DNA from: Octopus bimaculoides
Taxonomy: Eukaryota
Assembly: GCF_001194135.2 (NCBI RefSeq)
Contig: NC_068993.1
Span: forward strand, 41,065,894-41,120,541
Length of the DNA stretch: 54,648 nucleotides
Reading direction: 5' to 3'
Shown: positions 13,386 through 53,039 of the stretch, in pieces
How the letters are laid out: each line of letters begins with the position of its first letter
How positions within the stretch are numbered: position 1 is the first letter of the stretch
Made by a program: the position numbers and the translations under genes
The notes under the pieces: generated by a model
Seen by the model: only the letters and a program-made list of their open reading frames with translations
The model's database searches: none
Told to the model about the DNA's origin: nothing

Positions 13386-14350
13386 CCCACAATACATTTC
13401 AACGCTTCTAAAACAAACATTAGTTTGTTTATATTTGTCGCAATTTGTGGAGAGATTAGAACACGTAGATTTTTTTGCAAACAACTTGCAGATGCAAGTG
13501 TTACCAGTTGAAAGTTCTGCATACCGGATGCTAGCAAGTTTATGGGGGTGATCAGAAGAGAATGCGCGCCGTTTCGGGGCCTACCTCTCGATGGCATCAA
13601 TGCGCACCAGCCCCACTCACTGAAATGAGGTTCCGCTTGCTAGATCAACTAGTTATCAGGTTTCGCTTCATATTCTTCTAGCCATTAGTCATCGTCTCTT
13701 TTAAACCAAATCCAGTGGCTCGCATTTTCCACTATAGTCTGGATATCACTCACAGCGGTAATTGCCATACGATGAGTTAGGCCTAACGATAACAATATTC
13801 GTTTATTGGTTTCAGTCATTTAACTGCAGCCATGCTGGAGCACCGACCTTTAGTCGAACAAATCGACCCCAAGACTTATTCTTTGTAAGCCTAATACTTG
13901 TTCTATCGGTCTCTTTCGCTGAACACCGCTAAGTTACGGGGACGTAAACACACCAACATCGGTTGACAAGTGATGGTGGGTGGGGGACAAACACAGACAC
14001 ACAAGCATATATATATATATATATATATATATANNNNNNNNNNNNNNNNNNNNNNNNNNNNNNNNNNNNNNNNNNNNNNNNNNNNNNNNNNNNNNNNNNN
14101 NNNNNNNNNNNNNNNNNNNNNNNNNNNNNNNNNNNNNNNNNNNNNNNNNNNNNNNNNNNNNNNNNNNNNNNNNNNNNNNNNNNNNNNNNNNNNNNNNNNN
14201 NNNNNNNNNNNNNGGTTGGGAAGCAAGCTTCTAACCACACAACCACGCCTACATGATTCATGTATAGGTTCTCTCCTTGATTTCTCTTTCTCAATTACGT
14301 GCACATACTTCGTATCACGCATATACATACGATACAGATTTAAGATAATA

Positions 14351-16998: not shown

Positions 16999-18085
16999 TT
17001 ATAAAAAGAACAAAGAACATTTGTTTCTTCTATCATCTTGTTTCTGTTACTGGAATCCGGCTATGCTGGAGCACTGCGTTGAAGGGTTTAGTCGAACAAA
17101 TCGACCCCAATACTTAAGTCTGGTACATATTCTATTGCTTTCTCTTGCCAAACTGCTAAATTATAAGGACGTAAAAAACATCGGTTGTCAAGTGGTAGCA
17201 GGAGCNNNNNNNNNNNNNNNNNNNNNNNNNNNNNNNNNNNNNNNNNNNNNNNNNNNNNNNNNNNNATATATATATATATATATACGGCGGTCGTCCACAT
17301 AGTTTCCTGTCTACCAAATTCATCCTCTAAGCATTAGTCGTCCTGGGGCTATAGTTATAGGTACTTCGCCATGATGCGGCACGATGAAACTGAACCCAAA
17401 ACCATGTGGTGGCCAAGAGAGCTTCTTAACCAAATAACCATGCCTACACCTGTCTATAAATTTTGGTCCACAGTTAGCATTGACAGATGCAAACATCTTT
17501 TTCTTCATATGGTAGATCATTTTGAACAGGAAAATAGGAGATCGACTGGCCTCACTCCAATCAACAGTCTGAAATTGTAGCAAAAGCATAATAACAAACA
17601 ATAAGCAGATATGCGACTGCATAAACTGCTGTTCTCTCTGCTTCGCACACATCATCTACAATTGGTTGAGACAAACGTAAACGAGTTTCAACCCAAGCAA
17701 TGCAACTGTGAATTCTAAACCGTTAAACTCTGTGACTGATATTACAATTCTGCACCTCCATTTACAGCTGACATCTTTTGTGAAACACAATATAAACACA
17801 TTCCAGTAGGCCTGCACATTCTGAATAAACAGGATTCTCAGAAATATTCTGCTATGGGAACCTGACAAATTAACTCCTCCCTTGCATCAGTAAAAACACA
17901 CAGACCATAGGGCTGGAGAGAAATTTTATACTGGAGGGTCGTGCGGAATTAAGAGGAAATTTTTAAAACGGCATTAAAGAAAATTTTACTGCATAAGCTG
18001 GAAAATGTACGCTCATTGAACGAAAACTGTTGGTTAATCTTTACACACACACACGCACACACACACGCACACGCACACGCACACG

Positions 18086-18116
<31 letters not shown>

Positions 18117-18821
18117 GTATATATATATATGTATATANNNNNNNNNNNNNNNNNNNNNNNNNNNNNNNNNNNNNNNNNNNNNNNNNNNNNNNNNNNNNNN
18201 NNNNNNNNNNNNNNNNNNNNNNNNNNNNNNNNNNNNNNNNNNNNNNNNNNNNNNNNNNNNNNNNNNNNNNNNNNNNNNNNNNNNNNNNNNNNNNNNNNNN
18301 NNNNNNNNNNNNNNNNNNNNNNNNNNNNNNNNNNNNNNNNNNNNNNNNNNNNNNNNNNNNNNNNNNNNNNNNNNNNNNNNNNNNNNNNNNNNNNNNNNNN
18401 NNNNNNNNNNNNNNNNNNNNNNNNNNNNNNNNNNNNNNNNNNNNNNNNNNNNNNNNNNNNNNNNNNNNNNNNNNNNNNNNNNNNNNNNNNNNNNNNNNNN
18501 NNNNNNNNNNNNNNNNNNNNNNNNNNNNNNNNNNNNNNNNNNNNNNNNNNNNNNNNNNNNNNNNNNNNNNNNNNNNNNNNNNNNNNNNNNNNNNNNNNNN
18601 NNNNNNNNNNNNNNNNNNNNNNNNNNNNNNNNNNNNNNNNNNNNNNNNNNNNNNNNNNNNNNNNNNNNNNNNNNNNNNNNNNNNNNNNNNNNNNNNNNNN
18701 NNNNNNNNNNNNNNNNNNNNNNNNNNNNNNNNNNNNNNNNNNNNNNNNNNNNNNNNNNNNNNNNNNNNNNNNNNNNNNNNNNNNNNNNNNNNNNNNNNNN
18801 NNNNNNNNNNNNNNNNNNNNN

Positions 18822-18981
18822 NCAGCTCTCGCTCTCTCTCTCTCCAAGTTTCACCCTCTCTTTTCAGCTCTCTCTCTCTCTCTAGCTCTTTCTCTCCTCA
18901 GCTCTCTTTCCAGCTCTCTCTCCCCCTCTCCAGCTCTCTCCCCCTCTTCAGCTCTCTCTCCCCCTTTCCAGCTCTTTCTCC

Positions 18982-19029: not shown

Positions 19030-19799
19030 CTAGATGTGTCGCTGAGTCAAGGATGAAATGGACCGAGAGAATGTCTATGTCTGTTCATGACCTCAAGGGC
19101 ACCTAAATTCGATTAGCGAAAGTATTGTACACGTTACCAGGCCACTCATGCACTTGCTTGTGCAGGCCGACTGTACTCTCATTGCTCTGTACTTGAAAAA
19201 GGCATCAACACAACAGCTTCAGTGACTACGACAATGCAAATAGTTTTGATTGTGTAAGTCAGTCGTAAGGAAGACGTGAGTTTTTTTTTTTTTTGTGCAA
19301 CTTTTGAGTTACATCAGGTTAATAAGTTAAAATAGTTATTCTTTTACTTGTCTGAGTCATTTGACTGCGACCATGCTGGAGCACCGCCTTTAGTCGAACA
19401 ATTCGTGGCTGGCTGCGAGTAAAAGGCCTTTGAAATCCTCCAAAAGGCCAAAATGCATCTGGCGCTCTTATTGGCCGCTGCTAGAACGAATTTCCACCTC
19501 CCTCCGATATTTATGGTTCTTTTAACACAGCACATCCAATATGAAGTCTTATCTCAGGACAAATATCGCAGTAACTGGTCCATTGACAATGTATACATTA
19601 AACATGATATATAAATGACTATTTTACTTACTGTAGGGTTTATCTTGTTCTCAAAGATCATTAGTGATGCACCCAAGTGAATTGACTGCAACCACGAATC
19701 AAAATCAGACGATATATTTTGCTCAGCAAGAGCTGACATTTTAACCTTCAATGTTCGGTTGTCTTTATTGATAAACATTATTCAGCAATATCGAAGAAA

Positions 19800-20482: not shown

Positions 20483-20558
20483 ATTCCAAAAAGTGAACGA
20501 CAAAAAGTAAACAAATTGACATCACTGAAAGACTTGCAGGAGTTTTTACATGTAAACG
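20483..20558 (+). CDS. PVF: PVF (PDGF/VEGF-related factor) propeptide exon, IPKSERQKVNKLTSLKDLQEFLHVN
   Basis: Acceptor tattctattgcag|ATT and donor AACG|gtaagt; 76 nt, phase 0 to 1. The peptide resembles the PDGF-A/B N-terminal propeptide (IP...S..DLQ.LL). Phase matches the next exon. Confidence 0.85.
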
Positions 20559-22235: not shown

Positions 22236-23282
22236 AAGTAACATAAATAAATATTGGTTTCAAATTTTGGTACAAGGCCAGCAATTTCGAGGAAGAGCGT
22301 AAATCGATTTCATCAACCCCAGTGCTCAACTGGTGCTTATTTTGTCGACCCCGAAAGGATGAAAGGCAAAATCGACCTCGACGGATTCTGAACGCAGAAC
22401 GTGAAGACAGACGAAATGCTGCTAAGCATTGCGTCCGACGTGCAATCGATTTTGCCAGTTCACCACCTTAACGTAAATAAACATTACATAGTTTAGTCCA
22501 GCGCTATGCGTTTGTTATATAAGCATTTATTTATTGATAACAACACATAGAATACATAGAGCAACATTGAGCCTCCGGATCCGTGAGGCCCCTGGGCAAC
22601 TGCTCAATGTTGCCATGTCTTTGGTGCAAACTGAAAAAATTGGTATTTAAATCCTTTCTCATTTAGGCAATAAAAGATCTAAAGAAGGGCGAAGAAAGCA
22701 GAGACACACGAGAATACAAACTCAAATTATCAAAATGCAGCTAACAAAAATTGTGGAGGAAGAAAGAAATTCCACGCTGCAATTGTTTTCGTTCCAGGTT
22801 TGAACCTGTGGCTACAAGCAGAGAATTTTTATAGCGAAATTCTATACAATTATTTCGTTAAATTAGAATATTGTGTCTACTAAATAAATATTTTCTAATA
22901 TAGATTATTTTAATTATTAAAGCGGCGAGCTGCCAGAATTGTCAGCACATCAGACAAAATGCATCGGGCGTTTCGTTCGTCTTAACGTTTCAAGTTCAAA
23001 TTCCACCGAGATCGACTTCACTTTTTATCCTTTTGGGAATTGATGAAATACGTTCCAGTTCAGCATTGATGTCAATGTAATCAACAACTCCTCTTCCCCA
23101 AAACTTCAGGCCTTGTGCCTATAATAAATAGGATAGGTCGTATGGTAAAAGTTTGGTTCCTAATCACAGGGTTCCAGGTTCAGTACCATTGCGTAACACC
23201 TTGGGCAAGTGTCTTATACTATAGCCTCGGGCCGATCAAAATTTATGAGTGAATTTGCTGAACAGAAACTGAAAGAGGCTTG

Positions 23283-24080: not shown

Positions 24081-25022
24081 TTTCTTTAATATAGAACTGA
24101 ATGACATTTAAGTCGTTTGAGTATTCGTTTTCGGCATGAAACAAAGATTTCTGTTCACACACACATTTAATTCTCTCTGTTCATAAAATGGGTATTAGGC
24201 TAGTATATATATATATATATATATNNNNNNNNNNGTGTGTGTGATAACCTTTGTCACTGTGAATATGTGCGTGTATGTACGGCTTAGGATTGGCTGAAAT
24301 ATTGTTAACGTCACAGATATGGATAGACGGATAGGCATCTCAGAGAAAGGAAAAATAAAGCCAGAAAGAACTGAAAGGGAGAGGAAGGTAGAGACTGTTG
24401 AGAGAGAGAGAGAGAGAGACAGACAGAAAGTGGGGATGATGATGAGTAAGAAACATAAAAGAATAGCGATAGGGTAAGTGAAAGAACGGCAGGAGATTAA
24501 ATAAACTTATTCCTGATTTGGTGACTGAGTTTTGTATGAAAACAAAAGACGACAATCCTTTTGATTTGTGGCTTTGTGGTTAAGAAGCTTGCTTTGCACA
24601 GCCACGTGGTTCCGGGTTCGCTGCCATTCAGCAGTATCTTAGTCAAATGTCGTCTAAAGAACCAGGTCGACTAGTGCATTGTGAGGGAATTTTTATAGAC
24701 GGCAACTACGTGGAAGCCTGTCGTGTCTGTGTGTGTGTGTGCGTGTGCGCAGCGTGTAGCTGTGTGGTAAGAAGTTTGCTTCCCAACAGAGAAAGAGAGA
24801 GAGACTGGTTTTGGTGGTATTTCGGTGTATTTCTTACACAGCTCTCGATACGAACTTCTGGCTAGCCACACTTTAAGACAGGTTTTTAAGAAGCAGGAAC
24901 CCCAGGTACTTATCATCACTGGTATGATTCTTGTAGAAATTATTGCGCAAAGTAACATATCAGATAAGGGGAAAAGGGAAAGATGTCTAGCTTAATGCTT
25001 CAATTAAGCCAATGCGACATTG

Positions 25023-25126
<104 letters not shown>

Positions 25127-25131
25127 ATAGA

Positions 25132-26293
25132 TATGGTTGGTCAACAAGTTCGTTCGCTTTTTACCTTTGCTCATGCGTATTCGTTAGATACATTAACGTA
25201 GCTCGACGCGAACTTGCGACTTGACAGGTTATATTTTGTATGCTTGGAGAACCAAAACAAATAGTATCGGCACGTCATGCCATTTTCACATTTTAAAAAC
25301 AGAAAGCATCGGAAACCTGCAAGAAGACAAATGTTGTGTCGGGGTTAGAGAATGAACATGTCAGAAAAGGTTTCTAAGATTTCGGTTGGGAAATTCTTCT
25401 ATTCAAGAAGCACTACGCTCTGGCTGGCCATATGAGATTAATAACGACAAAGTGAAGTAATTAGTCGACACCAACCCCCGTTAAACGACCAAGATGATCG
25501 TATGTTTTCCAATAGTATCCAAATCGAATGTTGGAAACACCTGCATCAGCTTGGTTACATTAGCAAGCTCAATGTTTGGTTCCCACATCAATTGAATGAG
25601 CAGGACATGGCCCGACGAATGTCCATCTGCAATTCGTTGAAGATGCCTGAAGAAAACGATCTGTTAATGAGGGGAATGGTAACAGACGAGGAGACATAAT
25701 GATGTGAAGCGCAAATGATGAGGGGCGAAATGCGGCAACCTACCACAAACAACCTCCAAAGCAGGACTTCGCCCAAAGAAGGTTATGCTTTCATTTTATT
25801 GATTTACGAGCTTCTTCCCGCAAATAGGGCCATCAGTTCGAATGTGTACTCTGAGCAGCTGGACCAATTAAATGCAGCGATTCACCAGATGCCTCCAGAA
25901 CGTGGCATGTGTATTGTCTTTCGGCACGACAATGCACGCTTTTCTTTTCATATGCAGCAAACGTTACTGCAGATGAGCTGGGACGTTTTGCTTCACCTTC
26001 CATATTCGCCCGACCTTGTTCCTTCAGATTTCCACCAGTTTTGGTCTCTTCAAAATTCATTGAATAGACAGACCTTCAACTCTGAAGAGGATGTATAAAT
26101 TCACCTGAAAGAGTTTTTCACCAATAAAGACAGGAAATTCTTTTATCAGAGAATAATGGGTCTGCTCACATGAATGCAGAAGATACTGAAACTAAATGGT
26201 AATTATATCATTGATTGAATAAATCGCTTTATGCTTAAATCTTGAATTATTTTCCTTTAAAGAAAAAGAACGATCTTTTTGACCAACCCAATA
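25132..26293 (+). mobile_element. Near full-length decayed mariner DNA transposon
   Basis: Imperfect TIRs (TA-tggttggtcaacaagttcgttc and gaacgatctttttgaccaacccaa-TA) with flanking TA, enclosing transposase remnants. Confidence 0.93.
25237..26180 (+). pseudogene. mariner DD34D-family transposase pseudogene (stops and frameshifts)
   Basis: WFPHQLNE (WVPHEL motif), VTDEET (TGDEKW), HDNAR and YSPDLVPSDF motifs. Second-to-third Asp spacing is 32 rather than 34 in this copy. Confidence 0.93.
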
Positions 26294-27560: not shown

Positions 27561-28508
27561 ATTTTTTTTAATGAAAATTTTGTTACACAATATAATAGAT
27601 CCTAATCGATTTCGTTTTGGACGCTATAAAATAAAATATTTTCAAGAATACCACTCACTGTCGATGACATGATTCAACCCATAAAGAGAAGTATTTCAAG
27701 AAATTGATGCCAATAAAGAAATTCCATGCCAAAGTGTACTTGAGAGTAGAAACTATACAAGAATGTGTAATTACTAAAAGGAGACGTTTTAGTAATCAGG
27801 AGTTTGTATTTAATTGCAATTTGAGAACCTGAAATATTTGTATTTTCTAAATTTGTTATAAGTACGTCCCCAGTAAGGTTGTTTGTAATAATCAGCCTGG
27901 TTTTTCCTTCTCTCTCTCTCTCTCCAAAATAGAAACTGTATGCTTATTTTTGAGTCCTTGTATGTGTGTGTATGCATGTGCATGTGTACGTTTAAATGTG
28001 GGTGTATATAAATACGTATGTTTATATATGCGTAAGTATGTATATGTAGTGTTTGAGTGAATGCATTTGTGTATTAGAAATTATTTTAACCTATTAATAT
28101 CTTTTCTTCTATCTTTTACTTGCTTCAGTCATTTGACTGCTGCCATGCTGGGGCATCACCTTGAAGAGTTTTAGTCGAAGAAATCAACCCCCAGGAGGAC
28201 TTTTTTTAAAGCCAAGTCCTTATTTTCTCGGTCTCTTTTGCCTAACCGCTAAGTTACGGGGGACGTAAACACATCAACAGTGGTGGTGGAAGAGAAAGAG
28301 AGATATGTACAACGGGCTCCTTTCAGTTTCCGGTTAACTAATCCACTCAAGGCTTTGATTGTCCGAGGCTGTTGTAGAAGACACTTGCCCAAAGTGCCAC
28401 GCAGTGGGATTGAACCCTGAACCATGTGGTTGGCAAGCAAGATTTTTGCCACAAAGCCATGCCTGTGTCTCTATAAACTTCTAAATATAAACTTAAAAAA
28501 AACAAACC

Positions 28509-30418: not shown

Positions 30419-30442
30419 ATGGTGATTTCCAATATGCCAGTA
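30419..30442 (+). CDS. PVF: PVF 24-nt microexon, (D)GDFQYAS(T)
   Basis: Long polypyrimidine tract ending tttttcag|AT and donor AGTA|gtaagt; phase 1 to 1; open in frame with both neighbours. Confidence 0.75.
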
Positions 30443-34391: not shown

Positions 34392-34507
<116 letters not shown>

Positions 34508-34694: not shown

Positions 34695-34882
34695 CAAGTG
34701 AAATTGTCAATGCTGATTATTGCTCACCCCGGTTGACTACAATAGAGATTCCTCAACCAACAGAATACAACAAGTATTATTGGCCAAAATGTACCCGAGT
34801 AAAAAGATGCGGAGGTTGTGCTGAACACGAGTCACTTGCCTGTGTTCCCACTACTAAAGGAAAAGTTTTTAAAAAAGTACAA
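34695..34882 (+). CDS. PVF: PVF PDGF/VEGF domain exon, (T)SEIVNADYCSPRLTTIEIPQPTEYNKYYWPKCTRVKRCGGCAEHESLACVPTTKGKVFKKVQ
   Basis: Acceptor tttttcttgtag|CA and donor CAA|gtaagt; 188 nt, phase 1 to 0. C-x-P-R and W-P-x-C-x5-C-G-G-C motifs are diagnostic of the PDGF/VEGF family. Confidence 0.96.
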
Positions 34883-34942
34883 GTAAGTTCTCTTCTCTTC
34901 TCTCTCTTCTGTTGTAATTTCATTCGCCTAGAAGATATTATA

Positions 34943-35526
34943 TTAATCTTTTAGCATTCAAATTACTCTGTCGCATGTAAAAAAAAAAGAAAAAAGTGGG
35001 GTGGTATTAATGACCATGGGATTGCACCTAGAAAGTTACCCTCTGAGGCACAAGTCCTGGCAAGGTTGTTTATGGAAGATCAGTGATTGCCCATGTATGC
35101 CAGCCTCCCCTCTTCATACCACTGATGTTATCCAAGGGAAAGGCAAAGGCCAATACAACTTGGTACCAATGATGAAGCAACTCGTTTCTACAGCTGAGTG
35201 AACTGGAGCAATGTGAAATAAAGTGTTTTACTCAAGAACACAACACACAGCCTAGCCTGGGAATCGAACTCACGACCTCATGAATGTGAGTCTGATGCTC
35301 TAACTACTGAGCTACATGCCTTCGCACATCACATGTAATGCTTATTTATCTACATTGTCTTGAACCAATTATGCCTTATATTGTAACTTCAAAATTTTGT
35401 TGTGATTTTTTTCATTTTTAGAATGATATTGTAGGGTATTTGTGAAAGGCCAAATCTGGCTGACTTAAACTAAAATAAGTAGAATATTAGGGCCAGATAT
35501 AGCCAGCTTAAATCCTAAAAGAATAA
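34943..35526. mobile_element. piggyBac-like MITE interrupted by a SINE
   Basis: TTAA-tcttttagcatt start and aatcctaaaagaataa end (decayed TTAA-CCCTTTAGCATT-type TIR). Confidence 0.55.
34981..35331 (-). mobile_element. tRNA/CORE-like SINE family D nested in a piggyBac-like MITE (other copies 47735-47858 and 50570-50810)
   Basis: Minus-strand head TAGCTCAGTAGTTAGAGC...GAGTTCGATTCCC, then TGTTCTTGAGTAAAACACTT; flanked by duplicated catgtaa (34974-34980 and 35332-35338). Confidence 0.75.
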
Positions 35527-36276
35527 GCAACTCTCACTTCGGAAGTCTGATAGAGTAATATAAAATTCGTTATCATTGTCTTAATGTCCACTTCTCTATG
35601 CTCGCATGGGTCAGACAGAATTTGTTGAGTAAATTTTCTATGGCTGGATGTCCTTCCTGTTACCAACCCTCACCTGTTTCCAAGTGAGGCAGTATTTCAT
35701 CTTTGCTAGACATATTTTTGCAGAATATTGAAAATGAAATGACACTGCTTATATGACAGTGACACTCTTTTACAACACTTATGTGATGTCAAGACAAGGA
35801 TGCACAAATACATATATACATCGGGCTCCTTTCAGCTTTGTTACTCCTGGGGTTATATAGCAGAAAACACTTGTCCCAGTTACCATTCTGTAGGTCTGAA
35901 CCCAAAACCATGTGGTTGAGAAGTAAACTTTTTAACCACACCTGTGTCTAGAGTATCATATATGATAATATATAATTATCCTAATATGTAACTAAAAGGA
36001 ATATAATGGTGTATATGCATATGATTTTTTTTTTTTTCAAATGACTCCCTTCTACATAGACTATAGCTGGGACTAGACCTCAAAAAAACCATGTGGTTAG
36101 GAGGCAAACTTCATAACCACACAGCCATAAGTTCATCAAACTAACAATTAACGTTTGCTAAAATAAAATACAAAAATGTTTGTATAGTGTTTTATCATCA
36201 CCTAGCTATTTTCGGTTTTTGTTTACTTTCCATCTCCATTTATGTTTCCTAAACTTCTTCAATCTCCATCCTTTAG

Positions 36277-36569
36277 GTTGTGCGGTTAAATTACGACTAT
36301 TATGGAGCTCCAAGCCTGACTTTGGACAGAGTAGTTGGTATTGATCTTGAAACACATACAGATTGTGAACAAGTTTGCAAAGTGACAGAAGATGATTGTG
36401 ATGACAAAATACATATTTACAGTTCTGCAGATTGCTCCTGTCGTTGCAAACCATCTTTAAATACCAGATGTACACATCCAAAGACCTGGAACAAGAAGAC
36501 TTGTCGCTGCACATGTCCAAAATTAAAAGCTTGTGGACATGGTCTCTATTTTAATAAAATTCTTTGCAC
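36277..36569 (+). CDS. PVF: PVF exon: end of PDGF/VEGF domain (HTDCEQVC) plus VEGF-C-like C-x10/11-CxCxC repeats
   Basis: Acceptor ccatcctttag|GTT and donor TGCAC|gtaagt; 293 nt, phase 0 to 2. Encodes CDDKIHIYSSADCSCRC, CTHPKTWNKKTCRCTC and CGHGLYFNKILC. Confidence 0.95.
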
Positions 36570-37144: not shown

Positions 37145-38962
37145 AAAATTTATGAGGGGTTATATGGAATTCTTAAATGAGAATTGCTACCAAATATTTC
37201 CCCTGAGACTGACGTAAAGTCAGATAGACAGATGTTGAGGTTTATTTGCTCCATTAGTTTCTTTGAAATAAGACGTAAGTCGAGGTACGTTGGTACTTAT
37301 TCATGAAAAACGAAAAAAGAAAAAAAAAAAGAGGCGAAACTAAAAATTGTTTAAATAATTAATGAAGATAGAGATAACAAAGTATGATATAATTCAATGA
37401 ACGAAATACTTTATTGATCGTATATCACATCAATGAGAAGTAAATATATTTGTGATCATAACATTGTAAGTTAATAGATTTGAGCAGTGCAGTAGTTCTT
37501 CTGACTCTTTACGTTTTGAGTTCAAATTACTCCGGGAGGCGCAATGGCCCAGCGGTTAGGGCAGTGGACTCGCGGTCATAGGATCGCGGTTTCGATACCC
37601 AGACCGGGTGTTGTGAGTGTTTATTGAGCGAAAACACCTAAAGCTCCACGAGGCTCCGGCAGGAGATGGTGGCGAACCCTGCTGTACTCTTTCACCACAA
37701 CTTTCTCTCACTCTTACTTCTTGTTTCTGTTGTGCCTGTAATTCAAAGGGCCAGCCTTGTCCCACTCTGTGTCACGCTGAATATCCCCGAGAACTACGTT
37801 AAGGGTACACGTGTCTGTGGAGTGCTCAACCNNNNNNNNNNNNNNNNNNNNNNNNNNNNNNNNNNNNNNNNNNNNNNNNNNNNNNNNNNNNNNNNNNNNN
37901 NNNNNNNNNNNNNNNNNNNNNNNNNNNNNNNNNNNNNNNNNNNNNNNNNNNNNNNNNNNNNNNNNNNNNNNNNNNNNNNNNNNNNNNNNNNNNNNNNNNN
38001 NNNNNNNNNNNNNNNNNNNNNNNNNNNNNNNNNNNNNNNNNNNNNNNNNNNNNNNNNNNNNNNNNNNNNNNNNNNNNNNNNNNNNNNNNNNNNNNNNNNN
38101 NNNNNNNNNNNNNNNNNNNNNNNNNNNNNNNNNNNNNNNNNNNNNNNNNNNNNNNNNNNNNNNNNNNNNNNNNNNNNNNNNNNNNNNNNNNNNNNNNNNN
38201 NNNNNNNNNNNNNNNNNNNNNNNNNNNNNNNNNNNNNNNNNNNNNNNNNNNNNNNNNNNNNNNNNNNNNNNNNNNNNNNNNNNNNNNNNNNNNNNNNNNN
38301 NNNNNNNNNNNNNNNNNNNNNNNNNNNNNNNNNNNNNNNNNNNNNNNNNNNNNNNNNNNNNNNNNNNNNNNNNNNNNNNNNNNNNNNNNNNNNNNNNNNN
38401 NNNNNNNNNNNNNNNNNNNNNNNNNNNNNNNNNNNNNNNNNNNNNNNNNNNNNNNNNNNNNNNNNNNNNNNNNNNNNNNNNNNNNNNNNNNNNNNNNNNN
38501 NNNNNNNNNNNNNNNNNNNNNNNNNNNNTAGAACACAAATTTGCCAAATTTTTCTGAAAATTCCCAAAAATAAAAAAAGTTATGAAGGGTTATATGGAAA
38601 GCTTAAGCCATAATTCCGCCAAATATTTTCGGATAAATCGACTGCTGTTGAGGTTTGCTCGTTTCCATTAATTGTCTTTGAAATAAAACGTAAGTCGAGG
38701 TATGCGGGTACGTATTCATGACAAAAAAAAAAAAAGAAAAAAAACCAAAGAAAAAACCAAAAAAACACAAGCAACAATAAAAAGCGTGGGAAAAATTAAT
38801 GAAGACAAACATAAAACATGACGTAATTCAGTGGACGAAGTACAGTATTGATCGAATATCACATCGATGAGAAGTAAATATTGGTTGTAATCGCAACGTT
38901 GTGAGTTGAAAGATTAGGGCAGCGCAGTGAAATGTTCCGATTCTTTAAGTTCAAATTACGCC
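37145..38962 (+). repeat. Old direct tandem duplication (37145-37532 vs 38575-38962)
   Basis: Colinear blocks ttatga.gggttatatggaa, tctttgaaataa.acgtaagtcgaggta and attgatcg.atatcacatc.atgagaagtaaatat. Confidence 0.8.
37535..37831 (+). mobile_element. tRNA-derived SINE family C, truncated by assembly gap
   Basis: Homologous to 10494-10855; CpG-rich, so likely young or unmethylated. Confidence 0.85.
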
Positions 38963-41488
38963 GAAATCAATTTTCCGTTACCAACTCCCAGAGTCGATAA
39001 AGTAAAGTACCGGTCAAGTATTGAAGTCGATGATACTTAAGTCCCGTTCCTTCCCTTCAAAATTACTGGTTTTGAGCTGCCTAAATTAAAATAAAATTAT
39101 CACTTTAACTGCGACAGATAATAATAAAATAAATAAATAAATTGTTCCTGGCTGGAAAAGAAAATGCCCCCCCCTCCACCCCCTGNNNNNNNNNNNNNNN
39201 NNNNNNNNNNNNNNNNNNNNNNNNNNNNNNNNNNNNNNNNNNNNNNNNNNNNNNNNNNNNNNNNNNNNNNNNNNNNNNNNNNNNNNNNNNNNNNNNNNNN
39301 NNNNNNNNNNNNNNNNNNNNNNNNNNNNNNNNNNNNNNNNNNNNNNNNNNNNNNNNNNNNNNNNNNNNNNNNNNNNNNNNNNNNNNNNNNNNNNNNNNNN
39401 NNNNNNNNNNNNNNNNNNNNNNNNNNNNNNNNNNNNNNNNNNNNNNNNNNNNNNNNNNNNNNNNNNNNNNNNNNNNNNNNNNNNNNNNNNNNNNNNNNNN
39501 NNNNNNNNNNNNNNNNNNNNNNNNNNNNNNNNNNNNNNNNNNNNNNNNNNNNNNNNNNNNNNNNNNNNNNNNNNNNNNNNNNNNNNNNNNNNNNNNNNNN
39601 NNNNNNNNNNNNNNNNNNNNNNNNNNNNNNNNNNNNNNNNNNNNNNNNNNNNNNNNNNNNNNNNNNNNNNNNNNNNNNNNNNNNNNNNNNNNNNNNNNNN
39701 NNNNNNNNNNNNNNNNNNNNNNNNNNNNNNNNNNNNNNNNNNNNNNNNNNNNNNNNNNNNNNNNNNNNNNNNNNNNNNNNNNNNNNNNNNNNNNNNNNNN
39801 NNNNNNNNNNNNNNNNNNNNNNNNNNNNNNNNNNNNNNNNNNNNNNNNNNNNNNNNNNNNNNNNNNNNNNNNNNNNNNNNNNNNNNNNNNNNNNNNAAGT
39901 GGGTTATACATCTTTAGATGTATACCTGACTTTCCTATATAAAATCAAGAATTAACGGAACGCTGAACTCCAGACTATCAACACAAACAACATTTATTCA
40001 AGGTGGAATATATACATCTTTAGCTCTTGTTTGTTGAGACGTCTTCTGTGTGTGTGAGCATGGTTGTTGGGACGTTGGTATGTAGATGTGAGCGAGCTGT
40101 CTAGCGTAAGTTCGAAAGATGGAGAGAGACAACTAAACACGTCCTTGCTCAATCGCTGGCCAGCAAGAAAGAGACAGATCAAAGCGGGAAAAGCTTGGTT
40201 GTTGAATTCCACGCATGCGTGAGACTACGCATGCGCACAGCGTTACTACATATTCATACACCTGACTATTTTTTATGATCTTAGTCCTCTAAGCTTTCAC
40301 CAGGTCCTGTCAATAAACAAGTATTTTATTAGCTTAGTGTTCCCTCCAAAGCCTCCTAAGAGATCTAAGAAATCCATTCTGCTCCATTTTCATTTGAATA
40401 TTTCACAGACACCAACTCACATATCGTCCTTTATATTCCATTAATCATCGTTTTGACATCCCCATTTTCCTTGCTCGCATGGGCTAGACAAAATTTGTTG
40501 AGGCAGATGTTTTACAGCTAGATGCTCTCACTGCCGACAACTCTTACCTGTTTCCCAGTAACAATTCCCTATGGTCTAACATATTTTCCTGGAAGATAGG
40601 AAACAAAAATCACTTGTATGACAGTGGTGTTCATTTAGAGCTACCATTTAACGCTAAGGCAAGGAGACATTAACACACATACTATTATCTTTTCTACTCT
40701 GAGCACAAGGCCTGAAATTTTGGGGGAGGGGGCTAGTCGATTAGATTGACCCAGTACACAACTGGTACTTAATTTATCAACCCCTAAAGGATGAAAGGCA
40801 AAGTCGACCATGATGGAATTTGAACTCAGAACATAATGACATATGAAATACCGCTAAGCATTTTGCCCAGCGAGCTAACGTTTCTGCCAGCTCACCGCCT
40901 TAACGCACATACTATTATATATATAATACATATAAGGTGGCGAGCTGGCAGAATTGTTAGCTCGCTGGACCAAATACTTACAGCATTTTGCCCATCACTA
41001 CATTCTGAGTTCAAATTCCACCGTGGTCGACTTTGCCTTTCATCCTTTTGAAGTGGTCGATAAATTAAATATCAGTGAAACACTGGGGATCAATGTAATT
41101 GACTAATCTCCTCCCCAAATTTTTAGGCCTTGTGCCTACAGTAGAAAGGATTATATATAATATATATGCATGACAGGCTTCTTTCAGTTTCCATCTACCA
41201 AATACACTCACAAGGCATTGGTCAGCTTGAGATGATAGAAAACACTTACCTGAGGTGCTACACAGTGGGACTGAACACGAAATCAAGTGGTTGGGAAACA
41301 AACGTCTTTACTGCACAACCACACCTACCTACACTTATAATAATTCTGATGTTTGTTTGTTTTTTCTTCAATATGACAAAATTGAAGCTCAATATTTTCT
41401 TTTAAATTACTATTTATATATAAAGCAGATAATATTGACAATATATTCTTTATAATGTATTCTTTTTTATTTCCAATTTTCTCTGCAG

Positions 41489-41900
41489 ATGCCAACATTA
41501 CCGAGGCTATGATGGAACTAACTTTGCATCTGCTAATGCCAGTTTTGTGAAGCAAAGCGAAATTTCAAAATCAGGAAGCAACCAGCTTGATTCTAACAGG
41601 ATAAACAGTGATGGTAAACCTCAGACCGATCTTGCTAAAACTGATGCTGCTATTACCAATAACCAGTCTACCGATGATCTTGATAAAGGAAGTTCCCTGA
41701 TGGAGATCCTATCAACTGAAGGTCTTAGAACAACGACGATGCCAACAACAATAGAGACAACTACCGAAAAGAAAACAACCCTGAAGATTACGAAACCTTC
41801 AAAAGCGGCTAATATTTGTGCTTCAAAGAAATGTCCTCCCAGGTGGATGCCTGTTTTGCAAAGGAATGGTCTCTGTGGCTGTAAACCTAATTTTGGTTAA
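41489..41900 (+). CDS. PVF: PVF terminal coding exon: Ser/Thr-rich stalk and 4-Cys C-terminal module, stop TAA at 41898-41900
   Basis: Acceptor ttttctctgcag|A, phase 2 in, completing ...ILCT-CQHYRG...; 412 nt open to ICASKKCPPRWMPVLQRNGLCGCKPNFG*. Confidence 0.9.
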
Positions 41901-44218: not shown

Positions 44219-45927
44219 CAGATAAGAAAACCAGTTGTTTAATATATATTTTCATGTGAAAAAGATGATCAGAGGTTATGAGAGGAGGAAACTAACAGAT
44301 GTTGAAGACCTCCCACCCCAACAAGAATCTAACTTTCTAATGGCAATAATTTTCAATTATTGGTATCAATAAGTTTCACACCAATTAGAAAGAAAACAAA
44401 ATGTTTTTAAAACAAATTTAACGAATTAACAAATAAGTAATTAAAAGAAAATTAGTGCGTATATATACATATATATATATATATATACCCACTATATATA
44501 TATATATATATATATAGTTGCTTTTATGTAAAAGAATCATAAGTCCAACACGTTGCTTTTTCAGAAAACGAAAAAAATAGTTTCACCATTCCATAGCAAA
44601 ACCGTTGTACTACACTTTGACAATTTTTGATATCTTTGCATCTGAAGCAGCTGGAGATACGACAGTTTGACCAAAAGAACTGGCTATTGCAAGCGAAAAT
44701 AGATATTGAAAAAAACGCATTTGGCATATATATAATATATTTATTAATACATACATATATATATCAAAGTTTGTTTTTAATGTGGAATTATAATAAAAAC
44801 AATTTAACATTAAACAGAAGAATTACTTAATGCTTTTTTGTAAATTACATGTTTTTTATACTTTTATTAGAAGCCTGAGAGTCACTTAGCAGTTTCAACC
44901 TGCTAGTCATCATTGCACTATATATAATCTTTTATCTTTTACATATTTGTCATAAGACTGTGACCAAGCTGGAGCACCACTTTGAAGAAATTTTTAGTCA
45001 AATGAATTCACCCCAGAACTTTTTGCTTTGTAAATCTGGTACTTATTCTATCAATCTCTTTTTGATGAACCCCTAAATTACAAGGACATAAACACACCTA
45101 CACCTGTTCTCAAGCAGTGGCAGGGGAGGGGGTACACACACACACACACACACATGACAAACTTCTTTCAGTTTCCACCTATTGAATCCAATCTCAAAGC
45201 TTTTGTCAACTTGAGGCTATAACAGAAGGCACTCATTCTAGGTACCATACAGTGGAATTGAACTCGCAAGCTTCTTACCACACAGCTACACCTGTGCCTA
45301 ACATGTATAATGTAAAGGTGACTTTACAATAAATTTGACTCTACTATAAGTAAATATAAGGCTTTCCATAAACTAGCTTTAAAATATTCCCCAATTCAAC
45401 TCGTGCACACACACACACACACACACACACAGAGACTGAGGGTGGGCCAAAAGTCACAGGGTGGGTAGCTAGCTGAAATTTTTATTTAAGAAGCCTACAT
45501 CTTTGTAGGTTTCTTAAATATTGATAAGTTTCAATATTTAACTACATTTGAGAAAAAAAAAAAAATACAGACACTCTTCATGACTTTTGGTCTACCCTGT
45601 ATACAGTAAAAATGTGGGATTAGAAAATTATGAAGAGAGTGTAATCATATTTTTATTCTTTTTTTATGTCTTCATAAATGATGAAATAGTCTTGAATTTA
45701 TGTTCAAACATTTATTTTACATATTATGGACGTGTGGTAAGTTTTCTTTTCAACCACATGGTTCCAGGTTCAGTCCCACTGCATGGAATCTAGAGTAAGT
45801 GTCTTCTACTATAGCCTCAGGCTGACCAAAGTCTTGTGAGTGGATTTGGTAGATGGAAACTGAAAGAAGCCTATCATGCACGTGTGTATCTTTGTATTTG
45901 TTCCTCTCCACCCCAGCAGTTTGGCAA

Positions 45928-46677: not shown

Positions 46678-48054
46678 TTCCATTTATATCTCTTTCTAAT
46701 TTACAGTAAAAGGAGAAAAAAATTAAGTCTGTACTAAGTTTCACTGTCTAATAATATTCTATTTTAGTAGTTTTTCCTCTTAACTACTATTTCAAGATGA
46801 TACTTTACAATATATACATTAGTAGAAAATTTGGATCAGATTGTTAAGTTGTATAAATGTTGTTTACATACAGAGGTGAAGTAGAAAACATAAAAACAAA
46901 TATCTATCCACAATAATTAAGATCTCAATTAATAAAGTTGTCAAAATCCAACACATAACAAAGAAAGAAGTTAACAGTTATAAACATAATCAGCCAAAAC
47001 TGTCCTTAACAATGATCTATATTCAGAACAAATGGTAGAAAAGCAAACATTTTTACAGAGAACTCATAATTTAATTATTTCCAGTTGCTACTCCATTAAG
47101 AATAAGCATAATTCATTCAATAATTAAGATAATTAAAATAAATGTATTTAAATCAATACTTATCTTAAATCATTAGGAATACTTGAAGTTAAATTCATAT
47201 AATTTATCTTAATTATATGAGTGTAGAATGAATTATACTTATTCCTAATGAAACAGCTGTTGAAAGTAATGAATTTACGAGCTAACAGTAAAATTTCTGC
47301 TTTTCTGCTTTTCTTCCAAGCAAATGTTTTATATATATTTCTCATATCATCTATCCGTTTGTGAGAGATCAGTGGAGTACTGAGACTTCCTTTTCCTTGC
47401 TACACCAAATTACAAATAACAGTAGTTCTAAACCAGTACTTTTCAAAGTGGATTGTACTGGCCGCTGAGTGAGGAAAAATTTTATATGGGTTCTAGAAAC
47501 AAAGAGCTAGTAGTGGGGGAGGGAGTTGAATAGATAGATGCCTCTCTTTTATTATCTTTTACTTGTTTCAATCATTGGACTGTGACCAAGCTGGGGCACC
47601 ATTTTTAAATGGTTTTAGACAAGCATACTGATCGCAGAAATAATTTTTTATATCTGATTGATCTCTTGATGAGCCACTAAGTTAAGGAATGGATGGTTGA
47701 TTGGTGGAGGACAAAAACACATACATATATATAGTGCATGGTTCAGTGGTTAGAGCGTCAGGTTCACAATCATGAGGTAGTCGGTTTGATTCCTGGACCG
47801 GGCTGTGTGCTGTGTTCTTGAGCAAGACACTTAATTTCACATTGCAGTTTACAGTGCANNNNNNNNNNNNNNNNNNNNNNNNNNNNNNNNNNNNNNNNNN
47901 NNNNNNNNNNNNNNNNNNNNNNNNNNNNNNNNNNNNNNNNNNNNNNNNNNNNNNNNNNCCATGGTTTCAAGCTATTTTTAGTAAAATAAAATAATATTTT
48001 GCAAGGCCAGCTATCATCACCAGAAAAGCCAAGATTAATACATAAATACGAGGC

Positions 48055-49932: not shown

Positions 49933-50379
49933 TCGAATGTGGAATCTAAAAACAGAAACAATTCCTATCATAGTAGGTGCCTTAGGTATAATAAAAAAAT
50001 ATTCAGACAAATACATAACAAAAATAGCAGGACTTACAAATATNNNNNNNNNNNNNNNNNNNNNNNNNNNNNNNNNNNNNNNNNNNNNNNNNNNNNNNNN
50101 NNNNNNNNNNNNNNNNNNNNNNNNNNNNNNNNNNNNNNNNNNNNNNNNNNNNNNNNNNNNNNNNNNNNNNNNNNNNNNNNNNNNNNNNNNNNNNNNNNNN
50201 NNNNNNNNNNNNNNNNNNNNNNNNNNNNNNNNNNNNNNNNNNNNNNNNNNNNNNNNNNNNNNNNNNNNNNNNNNNNNNNNNNNNNNNNNNNNNNNNNNNN
50301 NNNNNNNNNNNNNNNNNNNNNNNNNNNNNNNNNNNNNNNNNNNNNNNNNNNNNNNNNNNNTATAAAAATAAAACTACTG
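49932..50379 (+). mobile_element. R4/Dong-like LINE 3' fragment embedded in (AAT)n (contains gap)
   Basis: MWNLKTETIPIIVGALGIIKKYSDKYITKI matches the RLE-clade C-terminal W...VPIIIGALG motif; AAT arrays on both sides. Confidence 0.55.
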
Positions 50380-51876: not shown

Positions 51877-53039
51877 NNNNNNNNNNNNNNNNNNNNNNNN
51901 NNNNNNNNNNNNNNNNNNNNNNNNNNNNNNNNNNNNNNNNNNNNNNNNNNNNNNNNNNNNNNNNNNNNNNNNNNNNNNNNNNNNNNNNNNNNNNNNNNNN
52001 NNNNNNNNNNNNNNNNNNNNNNNNNNNNNNNNNNNNNNNNNNNNNNNNNNNNNNNNNNNNNNNNNNNNNNNNNNNNNNNNNNNNNNNNNNNNNNNNNNNN
52101 NNNNNNNNNNNNNNNNNNNNNNNNNNNNNNNNNNNNNNNNNNNNNNNNNNNNNNNNNNNNNNNNNNNNNNNNNNNNNNNNNNNNNNNNNNNNNNNNNNNN
52201 NNNNNNNNNNNNNNNNNNNNNNNNNNNNNNNNNNNNNNNNNNNNNNNNNNNNNNNNNNNNNNNNNNNNNNNNNNNNNNNNNNNNNNNNNNNNNNNNNNNN
52301 NNNNNNNNNNNNNNNNNNNNNNNNNNNNNNNNNNNNNNNNNNNNNNNNNNNNNNNNNNNNNNNNNNNNNNNNNNNNNNNNNNNNNNNNNNNNNNNNNNNN
52401 NNNNNNNNNNNNNNNNNNNNNNNNNNNNNNNNNNNNNNNNNNNNNNNNNNNNNNNNNNNNNNNNNNNNNNNNNNNNNNNNNNNNNNNNNNNNNNNNNNNN
52501 NNNNNNNNNNNNNNNNNNNNNNNNNNNNNNNNNNNNNNNNNNNNNNNNNNNNNNNNNNNNNNNNNNNNNNNNNNNNNNNNNNNNNNNNNNNNNNNNNNNN
52601 NNNNNNNNNNNNNNNNNNNNNNNNNNNNNNNNNNNNNNNNNNNNNNNNNNNNNNNNNNNNNNNNNNNNNNNNNNNNNNNNNNNNNNNNNNNNNNNNNNNN
52701 NNNNNNNNNNNNNNNNNNNNNNNNNNNNNNNNNNNNNNNNNNNNNNNNNNNNNNNNNNNNNNNNNNNNNNNNNNNNNNNNNNNNNNNNNNNNNNNNNNNN
52801 NNNNNNNNNNTGTGATATAGCTATAATATATTTTGATAAATCAGCTAATAATAAACAGTATCTACATTACTTCTGAGGCTGGTTTTTAACACTATTTCCT
52901 TTAAATCTGGGTGAATTAGCATAATACAAGTGAAGTGTTTTGGCCACAGATTTGACCTTTTAGACATTCGTGTGAAACCGATTGTGGTTCTAGTTGTTGT
53001 CTAGCTCCGATTAATACCTGTTTAAATAGATAATCCAGC

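Follow-up and report, generated by a model that had tools for sequence, protein, structure and literature searches.

Paired absence of one cystine-knot disulfide in the octopus vegf gene and in other invertebrate VEGF-like factors

The cystine knot and its known exceptions

The cystine knot is regarded as the structural hallmark of PDGF/VEGF factors, and the eight-cysteine pattern of the family includes the PROSITE-type signature P-x-C-x(4)-R-C-x-G-C-C, with its adjacent C-C. To our knowledge, the role of the knot in these factors has been tested only in engineered VEGF-A mutants. In a growth-factor cystine knot, intrachain bonds join cysteines I-IV, II-V and III-VI; two of them form a ring, which is penetrated by the third (PMC3328748). 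The closest described system is one such human mutant, PDB 1mkk, entitled 'Disulfide deficient mutant of VEGF-A (C61A and C104A)' (Muller et al. 2002). Exactly the same bond is absent from it as from the octopus protein described here, and C61 is likewise Ala. As far as PMC3328748 relates the work of Muller et al. (2002), the VEGF fold survives without the C61-C104 bond, none of the VEGF-A disulfides adds thermodynamic stability, and the mutants change only in loops or in the arrangement of the monomers. 1mkk is man-made, about 30% identical to the octopus protein, carries Ala at the second position and lacks both the C9 cysteine and the BR3P repeats, whereas the octopus protein, with Gln at the second position, occurs naturally and is maintained by selection.

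Among the vertebrate members, VEGF-C and VEGF-D resemble the octopus protein in carrying BR3P (C-x10-C-x-C-x-C) repeats after the VEGF-homology domain, but they have all eight signature cysteines, no C9, and long propeptides that are proteolytically processed. PDGF-D lacks the fifth cysteine (a literature statement to this effect was searched for and none was found). Both PDGF-C and PDGF-D differ in having a CUB domain and another architecture, and a joint loss of C5 and C8 is not known to us in either. PDGF-C is also a vertebrate member with a broken eight-cysteine pattern (PMC10328876). Drosophila Pvf2, a functional Pvr ligand among the invertebrate PVFs, is reported to be without a conserved knot cysteine (PMC7752135), and is listed among the PVFs without interchain cysteines (PMC10328876). 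The two reports conflict over which Pvf2 cysteine is missing, and the supplements of the latter hold no Pvf2 or Octopus sequences. A disulfide map for any invertebrate PVF was not found in the literature.

The octopus gene and its two missing cysteines

The window, a stretch of 54,648 nucleotides from Octopus bimaculoides (NC_068993.1, positions 41,065,894 to 41,120,541), carries the PDGF/VEGF-family (PVF) gene LOC106872293, the octopus 'vegf', on its + strand. Five exons in the window, when spliced, match residues 23-352 of XP_052828401.1 (352 aa) exactly; they are bounded by canonical AG/GT sites, the introns are GT-AG and the reading frame is intact. Exon 1, with the signal peptide, lies outside the window. 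Exon 2 (20483-20558) encodes residues 23-47 plus one base, in the N-terminal propeptide, and is followed by a 24-nt microexon, exon 3 (30419-30442), which encodes DGDFQYAS; both have AG/GT flanks. The annotated protein requires this microexon, which is also spliced into the published O. sinensis/vulgaris probe target. Exon 4 (34695-34882) encodes the first half of the VEGF-homology domain, with the Pfam PDGF match, and exon 5 (36277-36569) the second half and then BR3P/CXCXC-type cysteine repeats. The last exon, exon 6 (41489-41900), holds the end of the third cysteine repeat, a Thr-rich linker, a C-terminal four-cysteine motif and a TAA stop. The first-pass annotation of this DNA, made from its letters, had given the range 34695-36378, which takes in exon 4, the intron and the start of exon 5. 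The order of the protein (signal peptide, short propeptide, VEGF-homology domain, three repeats, linker, C-terminal motif) is a VEGF-C/D-like architecture. The repeats read C159-x11-CSCRC, C183-x10-CRCTC and C204-x10-CTC, and the C-terminal motif, KCPxRWxxVxQxNGxxGCKP, is also kept in the relatives P0002 and P0179. No matches were obtained in tRNA and Rfam scans of the window.

The translation of exon 4 reads ...WPKCTRVKRCGGCAEHESLACVPT..., and that of exon 5 reads ...ETHTDCEQVCKV.... Of the eight signature cysteines, six remain. In exon 4 these are C1 (C65, 34721-34723), C2 (C88, 34790-34792), C3 (C94, 34808-34810), C4 (C97, 34817-34819) and C6 (C105, 34841-34843), while C5, the VEGF-A C61 position, is occupied by Ala98 (GCT, 34820-34822) in the ungapped HMMER alignment to VEGF-A and in the family alignment. 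In exon 5, C7 is C148 (36364-36366), C8, the VEGF-A C104 position, is Gln150 (CAA, 36370-36372), and an extra cysteine, C9, is C152 (TGC, 36376-36378), the third Cys of the usual invertebrate C-x-C-x-C. HMMER pairs ...RCGGCAEHESLACVPT with VEGF-A ...RCGGCCNDEGLECVPT without gaps, which places Ala98 on C61. The sequence also aligns to VEGF-D (2xv7) across the whole domain; C148 falls there on the first Cys of the C-x-C, and Gln150 therefore on the second, the C104 equivalent. The two non-cysteine codons and the six kept cysteines had been noticed in the first-pass annotation, and the translation and the family alignment bear it out. Its view that the lost pair forms one VEGF-A disulfide agrees with the HMMER alignments and with the title of 1mkk, and the likeness it drew to engineered C61A/C104A variants is matched by 1mkk being the best PDB sequence match (E=5.8e-09; structural match at target-normalised TM 0.66-0.70). 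Loss of C4 in place of C5 was considered and is ruled out by the spacing on both sides and by the preceding Gly.

The octopus protein reads P-K-C-T-R-V-K-R-C-G-G-C-A and so departs from the eight-cysteine signature. At the sequence level, it also falls short of the three intrachain disulfides of a cystine knot, as both III-VI cysteines are absent. The two putative interchain cysteines, C88 and the C97 of G96-C97, are present at the correct spacing to C3 and C6 and are invariant in a 75-sequence alignment.

The Pfam PDGF profile (PF00341; cut-off 27 bits) places the protein in the family: the peptide scores 55.5 bits, with E=7e-15, over profile positions 1-81 of 82, and the full protein 53.2 bits. 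For CXCXC (PF03128; cut-off 15 bits) the score of the repeats is 18.8 bits. The Octopus orthologs are named 'vascular endothelial growth factor D' by NCBI. An AlphaFold2 model of residues 56-217 has a mean pLDDT of 96 and a pTM of 0.75. In a Foldseek search, PDGF-B, VEGF-A and VEGF-C were matched by it at a target-normalised TM of 0.7-0.77; the top matches, which include VEGF-B and VEGF-E as well, all have a probability of 1.00 and a range of 0.63-0.77. A PDGF/VEGF monomer fold is thus predicted, the model being one of the monomer domain, where the first-pass annotation had named the dimer. In the same model, C152 lies four residues past C148 on one predicted strand, and its pairing with C97 would in principle close a different ring.

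The gene shows no sign of decay; selection on it is purifying, and its ortholog is expressed. Both cysteines are absent from two independently sequenced species, O. vulgaris (Ala/Gln) and O. sinensis (Ser/Gln); the first codon is GCT in the former and TCT in the latter, and the second is CAA in all three Octopus species. By the Nei-Gojobori method, dN/dS comes to 0.16 and 0.14 for the whole CDS, and to 0.10-0.11 when the VEGF-homology domain and the repeats are taken by themselves. P0002 and P0179, relatives of 50% identity with complete CDS on transcript-like SRA contigs of 1-4 kb, and possibly from another cephalopod lineage, have Ser/Glu at C5/C8. It has been reported that a 'vegf' probe for LOC115218638 marks hemocytes and a sub-epidermal punctate pattern in O. 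vulgaris paralarvae, where vegfr marks endothelial cells (Styfhals et al. 2022, PMC9712504). The printed 399-nt target of this probe is identical to the O. sinensis CDS and reads RCGGCSEH.

It is hardly conceivable, on this evidence, that the non-cysteine codons are sequencing or assembly errors, or that the locus is a pseudogene. The window does come from a gapped draft, with 3794 N in ten runs, and a newer O. bimaculoides assembly (L001), in which the exons are identical, contains N runs too; it may not be independent and was not taken as confirmation for this reason. Against an error or decay stand the two other genome projects, with differing residues (Ser/Ala) at the first site, the unbroken frame and splice sites, the dN/dS of the full CDS, the printed spliced probe target with its in situ signal, and the same state in the 50%-identical relatives. 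Pseudogene and assembly error are thereby refuted for practical purposes. The frame, splice sites and function claimed in the first-pass annotation are upheld by the exact gene model and the ortholog expression, and the dN/dS it had called for speaks against neutral decay.

Recurrence of the paired loss in the family

From 150 representative relatives, 146 were classified, and 147 homologs were aligned with MAFFT. CGGCC together with C-x-C-x-C is found at the knot positions in 110 of the 147, the invertebrate pattern which the first-pass annotation had taken as usual. Both C5 and C8 are lost in 18 aligned proteins, or 20 when two unaligned ones are added. Among the classified relatives, 16 have lost C8 only and none C5 only (Fisher p = 2.7e-15, uncorrected for phylogeny). 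Counted from C1 to the C-terminus, the cysteines are even in number in all 18 double-loss proteins, in 2 single-loss proteins (14 odd) and in 97 canonical ones (13 odd). The even count in every counted double-loss protein fits the removal of one whole disulfide, as was first proposed for octopus. C2, C4 and C9 are Cys in every homolog with the site covered. For C152 this amounts to 146 of 146, so that it is not a new compensating cysteine, and that candidate was rejected.

The double loss occurs in bivalves, gastropods, a chiton, a bryozoan, a horseshoe crab and an insect, in the genera Saccostrea, Pinctada, Mytilus, Nucella, Babylonia, Physella, Liolophura, Watersipora, Tachypleus and Nilaparvata. 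Examples are the proteins of Saccostrea echinata (XP_061184532.1), Pinctada imbricata (KAK3099359.1), Nucella lapillus (KAL8606233.1), Liolophura sinensis (XP_064608581.1), Watersipora subatra (XP_067948210.1), Tachypleus tridentatus (XP_076341849.1) and Nilaparvata lugens (XP_039275008.1). All are database predictions, and no published study of protostome double-loss PVFs was found. They share with the octopus protein the CGGC-x plus C-x3-C motifs, the downstream cysteine repeats and the even cysteine count; they differ in being 30-40% identical, in having Thr most commonly at C5, and in having Val, Pro or Ala at C8. Many molluscs have canonical and cysteine-deficient PVFs side by side.

The first-pass annotation had named a divergent paralog as a possibility. 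A peculiar paralog or a one-off is not supported: the gene is the 'vegf' of the literature, its state is that of all three Octopus species, and the double loss is found in about 13% of related PVF clusters from several phyla, a frequency that is biased because the 150 homologs are those most similar to the query. Judged from the aligned sequences, the paired loss is real yet not unique, recurring in invertebrate VEGF-like factors, and in the octopus lineage it is old, being common to the Octopus species and the 50%-identical relatives. In 200 bootstrap neighbour-joining trees, built from about 154 columns and weakly supported, C5 changes state at least 10 times and C8 at least 5 times; on these trees the other protostome double losses would mostly be of independent origin. 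C8 appears to go before C5, an order read only from the missing C5-only class and not from a rooted reconstruction.

Pairing of the remaining cysteines and its meaning

The octopus PVF is probably a VEGFR/PVR ligand that has shed one knot disulfide, the equivalent of C61-C104, and has kept its fold as an open-ring covalent dimer. The penetrating bond C65-C105 (C26-C68 in VEGF-A) and the ring bond C94-C148 (C57-C102) would be kept, along with the interchain cysteines C88 and C97 (C51/C60). The PDGF/VEGF fold would then persist in a secreted, covalent antiparallel dimer with the knot ring open, acting as a hemocyte-derived ligand on the VEGFR/PVR of endothelial cells. Receptor binding and activation as a dimer are putative, and are suggested by the hemocyte expression of the ortholog and by endothelial vegfr in O. 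vulgaris. That it is 'the' octopus VEGFR ligand is an assumption, based on the use of the LOC106872293 ortholog as vegf in the literature. The octopus gene would be one instance of a repeated protostome route, in which the loss of C8 leaves an odd cysteine count and the loss of C5 then restores an even one.

It could also be supposed that the knot has been rebuilt, C97 pairing with C152 to give a ring of C94-GG-C97 and C148-EQV-C152 around C65-C105. In that case C88 would be left unpaired or form one symmetric C88-C88' link, or else the dimer would be held together non-covalently. C152 sits at the opposite end of a predicted beta-strand from C148 (93-97 of the model), and the alternation of side chains along it should turn C152 to the C148 side. 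In the double-loss protein P0064, a one-residue deletion puts the single Cys at the C5-to-C6 spacing. Protostome PVFs are commonly without interchain cysteines, a pattern that is maybe an alignment artefact (PMC10328876), and with this warning the CGGC-x motif admits both readings. Such a rebuilt ring is nonetheless improbable. C9 is present in 110 of 110 canonical proteins, where its role already has no need of C4. C88 is invariant among the double-loss proteins and has no known partner except C4'; had C4 been redeployed, the orphaned C2 would be expected to decay. The Gly found before the interchain Cys of every solved VEGF (PMC3328748) is retained before C97. The flanking spacing (C3-x2-C, C-x7-C6) is that of C4 and not of C5, and re-pairing would leave two orphan cysteines, at odds with the clean even count.

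The coexistence of canonical and cysteine-deficient PVFs in many molluscs raises another thought, namely that the gene is a divergent paralog which modulates or antagonizes PVR/VEGFR while a canonical nine-cysteine PVF elsewhere is the main agonist. In word-indexed searches, the spliced peptide gave no matches, a 75-sequence profile gave 5 proteins only, and the canonical relative P0004 gave only itself and P0013. A role as modulator is considered unlikely, as the ortholog is the vegf of the octopus cell atlas, with hemocyte expression that complements endothelial vegfr, the receptor-binding domain is under strong purifying selection, engineered VEGF-A without the same bond keeps its native structure except in loops, and no sequence feature suggests that receptor binding was lost.

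The bond removed by engineering from VEGF-A is here naturally absent, both from a gene that is conserved and expressed and, independently, from many other lineages of invertebrates. These proteins offer natural experiments on the purpose of the third knot disulfide, be it folding efficiency, redox or temperature tolerance, mechanical stability or processing. They also carry a warning for annotation and for surveys of the family's evolution, in which CGGC-x proteins, not matching the cysteine signature, may be mis-scored as being without the interchain bond. Among invertebrates, only cephalopods have a closed circulation lined with endothelium. As a bolder and rather doubtful idea, their VEGF-VEGFR axis may run on a ligand without a closed knot, the C5-C8 bond being dispensable and often discarded by protostomes, C8 first, by way of a form in which one cysteine is unpaired, and then C5. 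If this is true, with no canonical octopus paralog and full agonist activity, the knot would be unnecessary in nature for VEGF signalling, and the single-loss forms would point to a PVF cysteine, free or in a different pairing, that has not yet been described. The practical weight of the finding is moderate; knowledge of the family is refined by it, not overturned.

Gene structure and genomic surroundings

The window is AT-rich eukaryotic DNA, and the two exons from which a PDGF/VEGF-family (PVF) gene had been proposed translate as SEIVNADYCSPRLTTIEIPQPTEYNKYYWPKCTRVKRCGGCAEHESLACVPTTKGKVFKKVQ and VVRLNYDYYGAPSLTLDRVVGIDLETHTDCEQVCKVTEDDCDDKIHIYSSADCSCRCKPSLNTRCTHPKTWNKKTCRCTCPKLKACGHGLYFNKILCT, respectively. 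The peptide matches the Pfam PDGF/VEGF profile (PF00341; E=7e-15, 55.5 bits, cut-off 27), and its tail matches the Pfam CXCXC repeat profile. In an exhaustive HMMER search over 1.84 billion representative proteins, the homolog cluster P0001 (352 aa) was 100% identical over the query; it is XP_052828401.1, the 'uncharacterized protein LOC106872293' of Octopus bimaculoides. Residues 23-352 of this protein were rebuilt exactly from five forward-strand segments: exon 2 (20483-20558), exon 3 (30419-30442), exon 4 (34695-34882), exon 5 (36277-36569) and the last, exon 6 (41489-41900), which closes at a TAA stop. All five have a canonical AG acceptor, and a GT donor is present wherever an intron follows. 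Exon 3 is a 24-nt microexon with canonical splice sites, encoding DGDFQYAS, and is also kept in O. sinensis and O. vulgaris. Exon 1, carrying the signal peptide MGLKLFFLLLSLTGTITLSKTQ, lies outside the window; the newer assembly places it ~30 kb upstream of exon 2. It replaces the start of an older gene model (XP_014774720.1, 376 aa) at 19453-19590 (+), which begins with MHLALLLAAARTNF... and is not signal-peptide-like.

The encoded protein starts with a signal peptide and a short propeptide, followed by the VEGF-homology domain. Downstream of this domain come three BR3P-type cysteine repeats, then a linker rich in Thr and finally a C-terminal motif of four cysteines. The Thr-rich stretch in exon 6 (TTTMPTTIETTTEKKTT, 41700-41810, +) is far longer in the homolog clusters P0002 and P0179 and is followed by the conserved motif C-x4-C-P-x-R-W-x2-V-x-Q-x-N-G-x2-G-C-K-P. 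Together, they look like a mucin-type O-glycosylated linker and a small C-terminal cysteine module.

The window appears to be part of a gapped O. bimaculoides draft. It holds ten N runs (336-435, 14034-14213, 17206-17265, 18138-18822, 24225-24234, 37832-38528, 39186-39896, 47859-47958, 50044-50360 and 51877-52810; 3794 bases in total), and the five coding exons are free of them. TG/CA and TA-rich simple repeats are common (e.g., ~25000-25130 and 23300), including a (TG)n microsatellite of ~110 bp (34394-34505), 190 bp upstream of exon 4. A dispersed repeat with the shared core AACCATGTGGTT..AAACTT occurs in five copies against zero expected, three on the forward strand (28420-28444, 35906-35930 and 36087-36111) and two on the reverse (23149-23173 and 45739-45763); two copies lie inside the intron separating exons 4 and 5. 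A tRNA-like stretch at ~35225-35335, for which ARAGORN and Rfam reported nothing, suggests SINE-type elements. In intron 2, a 127-aa ORF (25715-26098, +) looks like part of a mariner-type transposase (Pfam Transposase_1 at 22.4 bits, slightly below the cut-off of 24) and is probably a decayed transposon.

The replaced cysteines and the state of the gene

The first-pass annotation had claimed that C5 and C8 of the eight family signature cysteines (C1-C8) are replaced by Ala and Gln. The codons are as it read them, GCT at 34820-34822 (Ala98) and CAA at 36370-36372 (Gln150), and the paired loss is confirmed at the level of sequence. Since the HMMER alignment of RCGGCAEHESLACVPT with VEGF-A RCGGCCNDEGLECVPT is gap-free, Ala98 falls on VEGF-A C61. 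The retained Cys97 is spaced as C60 on both sides (C3-x2-C and C-x7-C6) and follows the Gly that all solved VEGFs have ahead of their interchain Cys (PMC3328748). Gln150 is the equivalent of C104, because C148 aligns with the first Cys of the VEGF-D C-x-C. In VEGF-A, C61 and C104 form one disulfide, and the PDB sequence that best matches the octopus peptide (E=5.8e-09) is 1mkk, titled 'Disulfide deficient mutant of VEGF-A (C61A and C104A)'.

Orthologs from separate genome projects, XP_029644415.1 (O. sinensis) and CAI9731894.1 (O. vulgaris), share 96% identity with the window's protein, and both cysteines are missing from each of them (TCT, Ser, and CAA in O. sinensis; GCT and CAA in O. vulgaris). 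The C5 site thus varies between close species, being Ala in O. bimaculoides and O. vulgaris and Ser in O. sinensis and in the target of a published probe; a single base change leads from TGT to Ser, and a further one to Ala. Measured against O. bimaculoides by the Nei-Gojobori method, dN/dS comes to 0.16 and 0.14 for the complete CDS of the two orthologs, and to 0.10-0.11 across the VEGF-homology domain and repeats. The clusters P0002 and P0179 carry CGGCS and CVEEC, show 50% identity across the 160 residues of the query (~40% for the full-length protein), and have complete CDSs on transcript-like, SRA-assembled contigs of 1-4 kb. They would represent another cephalopod lineage, because they share the Thr-rich linker and the C-terminal motif.

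The 'vegf' probe listed in the octopus brain cell atlas is LOC115218638, and the atlas localises vegf to hemocytes and to puncta beneath the epidermis, and vegfr to endothelial cells (PMC9712504). The 399 nt probe in the atlas supplement matches the O. sinensis CDS exactly over a stretch that starts in exon 1 and reaches into exon 5, and it reads RCGGCSEH. Therefore, the LOC106872293 ortholog is the octopus 'vegf' and is expressed. The possibility of an artefact or a pseudogene is refuted by the missing cysteines of both orthologs, the exact gene model with canonical splice sites, the dN/dS values and the matching probe. The earlier view of a functional gene, rather than one in decay, holds: splice sites are canonical, dN/dS is 0.14-0.16 against the ~1 that would speak for decay, and the ortholog is expressed. 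On the basis of the orthologs, dN/dS and the published expression, LOC106872293 is a functional gene, and its product is a conserved, expressed PVF that lacks the C5 and C8 cysteines. A divergent paralog acting as a modulator is improbable, as the ortholog is the field's own vegf.

Cysteine patterns among PVF relatives

The alignment covered the VEGF-homology domain in 147 of the 150 best relatives, leaving out two without an aligned C1 and one fragment. The pattern named earlier as usual for invertebrates, CxCxC, is carried by the 110 canonical clusters (CGGCC with C-x-C-x-C). The octopus-like double loss (CGGC-x with C-x3-C) was found in 18 clusters, or 20 with two that have no search motif. 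In 16 others only the VEGF-A C104 equivalent is absent (CGGCC with C-x3-C), leaving C5 without its partner (P0024, P0031, P0039, P0046, P0047, P0051, P0054, P0059, P0068, P0072, P0087, P0101, P0109, P0126, P0130 and P0149). Loss of C5 with C8 kept was seen in none of the aligned relatives. The two losses are associated (Fisher p = 2.7e-15, uncorrected for phylogeny).

Double loss occurs in bivalves (Saccostrea, Pinctada, Mytilus), gastropods (Nucella, Babylonia, Physella) and a chiton (Liolophura), and outside molluscs in the bryozoan Watersipora, the horseshoe crab Tachypleus and the planthopper Nilaparvata; single loss was found in Solemya, Sinanodonta, Ruditapes, Haliotis and Patella. The first-pass interpretation is largely right, but it overstated uniqueness, as 18-20 clusters in several phyla share the double loss.

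Counted from C1 to the C-terminus, cysteines are even in number in 97 canonical clusters and odd in 13 (commonest 20 and 24), even in all 18 double-loss clusters (commonest 18, 22 and 24), and even in two and odd in 14 single-loss clusters (commonest 23). Two cysteines fewer with parity kept is what the removal of one whole disulfide would predict. When the C5 and C8 columns were masked, a neighbour-joining tree mixed double-loss with single-loss proteins in a large mollusc clade and placed further double-loss proteins among canonical ones. Over 200 bootstrap trees, C5 changes state 10-15 times and C8 5-14 times; the trees themselves are weak, but repeated independent loss is still the robust reading. 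Drosophila Pvf2 has been described as lacking a conserved knot cysteine (PMC7752135), and interchain cysteines are often absent in protostome PVFs, possibly as an alignment artefact (PMC10328876). No paper was found describing the combined loss of C5 and C8, the class that lacks C8 alone, or the parity rule.

Predicted fold and disulfide arrangement

An AlphaFold2 model of residues 56-217 (input alignment of 75 sequences) gave a mean pLDDT of 96 and a pTM of 0.75. Its top Foldseek matches in the PDB were PDGF-B, VEGF-A, VEGF-B, VEGF-C and VEGF-E (probability 1.00, target-normalised TM 0.63-0.77), and the PDGF/VEGF fold is thus predicted to be kept. Among the features that define the family, the octopus protein has the profile, the predicted fold, the BR3P repeats and, as read from its residues, the interchain-cysteine pattern; the eight-cysteine signature and, likewise by residue, the three-bond knot are absent.

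Each monomer would retain the C65-C105 and C94-C148 bonds, C88-C97' bonds would join two monomers, and the knot ring would stand open. C152, which corresponds to the third Cys of C-x-C-x-C (C9), would find its partner inside the C-terminal cysteine repeats, presumably as in canonical PVFs. It was ruled out as a new compensating cysteine, because C9, like C2 and C4, is Cys in all homologs covering the site. On geometry alone, a C97-C152 bond could rebuild the knot; this is disfavoured, as canonical proteins also have C152, C88 remains invariant, C97 is marked as C4 by its spacing and preceding Gly, and the re-pairing would orphan two cysteines. The protein may be secreted by hemocytes and signal via VEGFR/PVR on endothelial cells.

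Functionally, the engineered VEGF-A C61A/C104A comes closest. In the summary of Muller et al. (2002) given in PMC3328748, no disulfide adds thermodynamic stability to VEGF-A, and the disulfide mutants depart from the wild type solely in their loops or in how the monomers are arranged. By this analogy, an open knot would be compatible with a working ligand. The octopus protein is a natural variant within a known family, in which double-loss proteins are already annotated.
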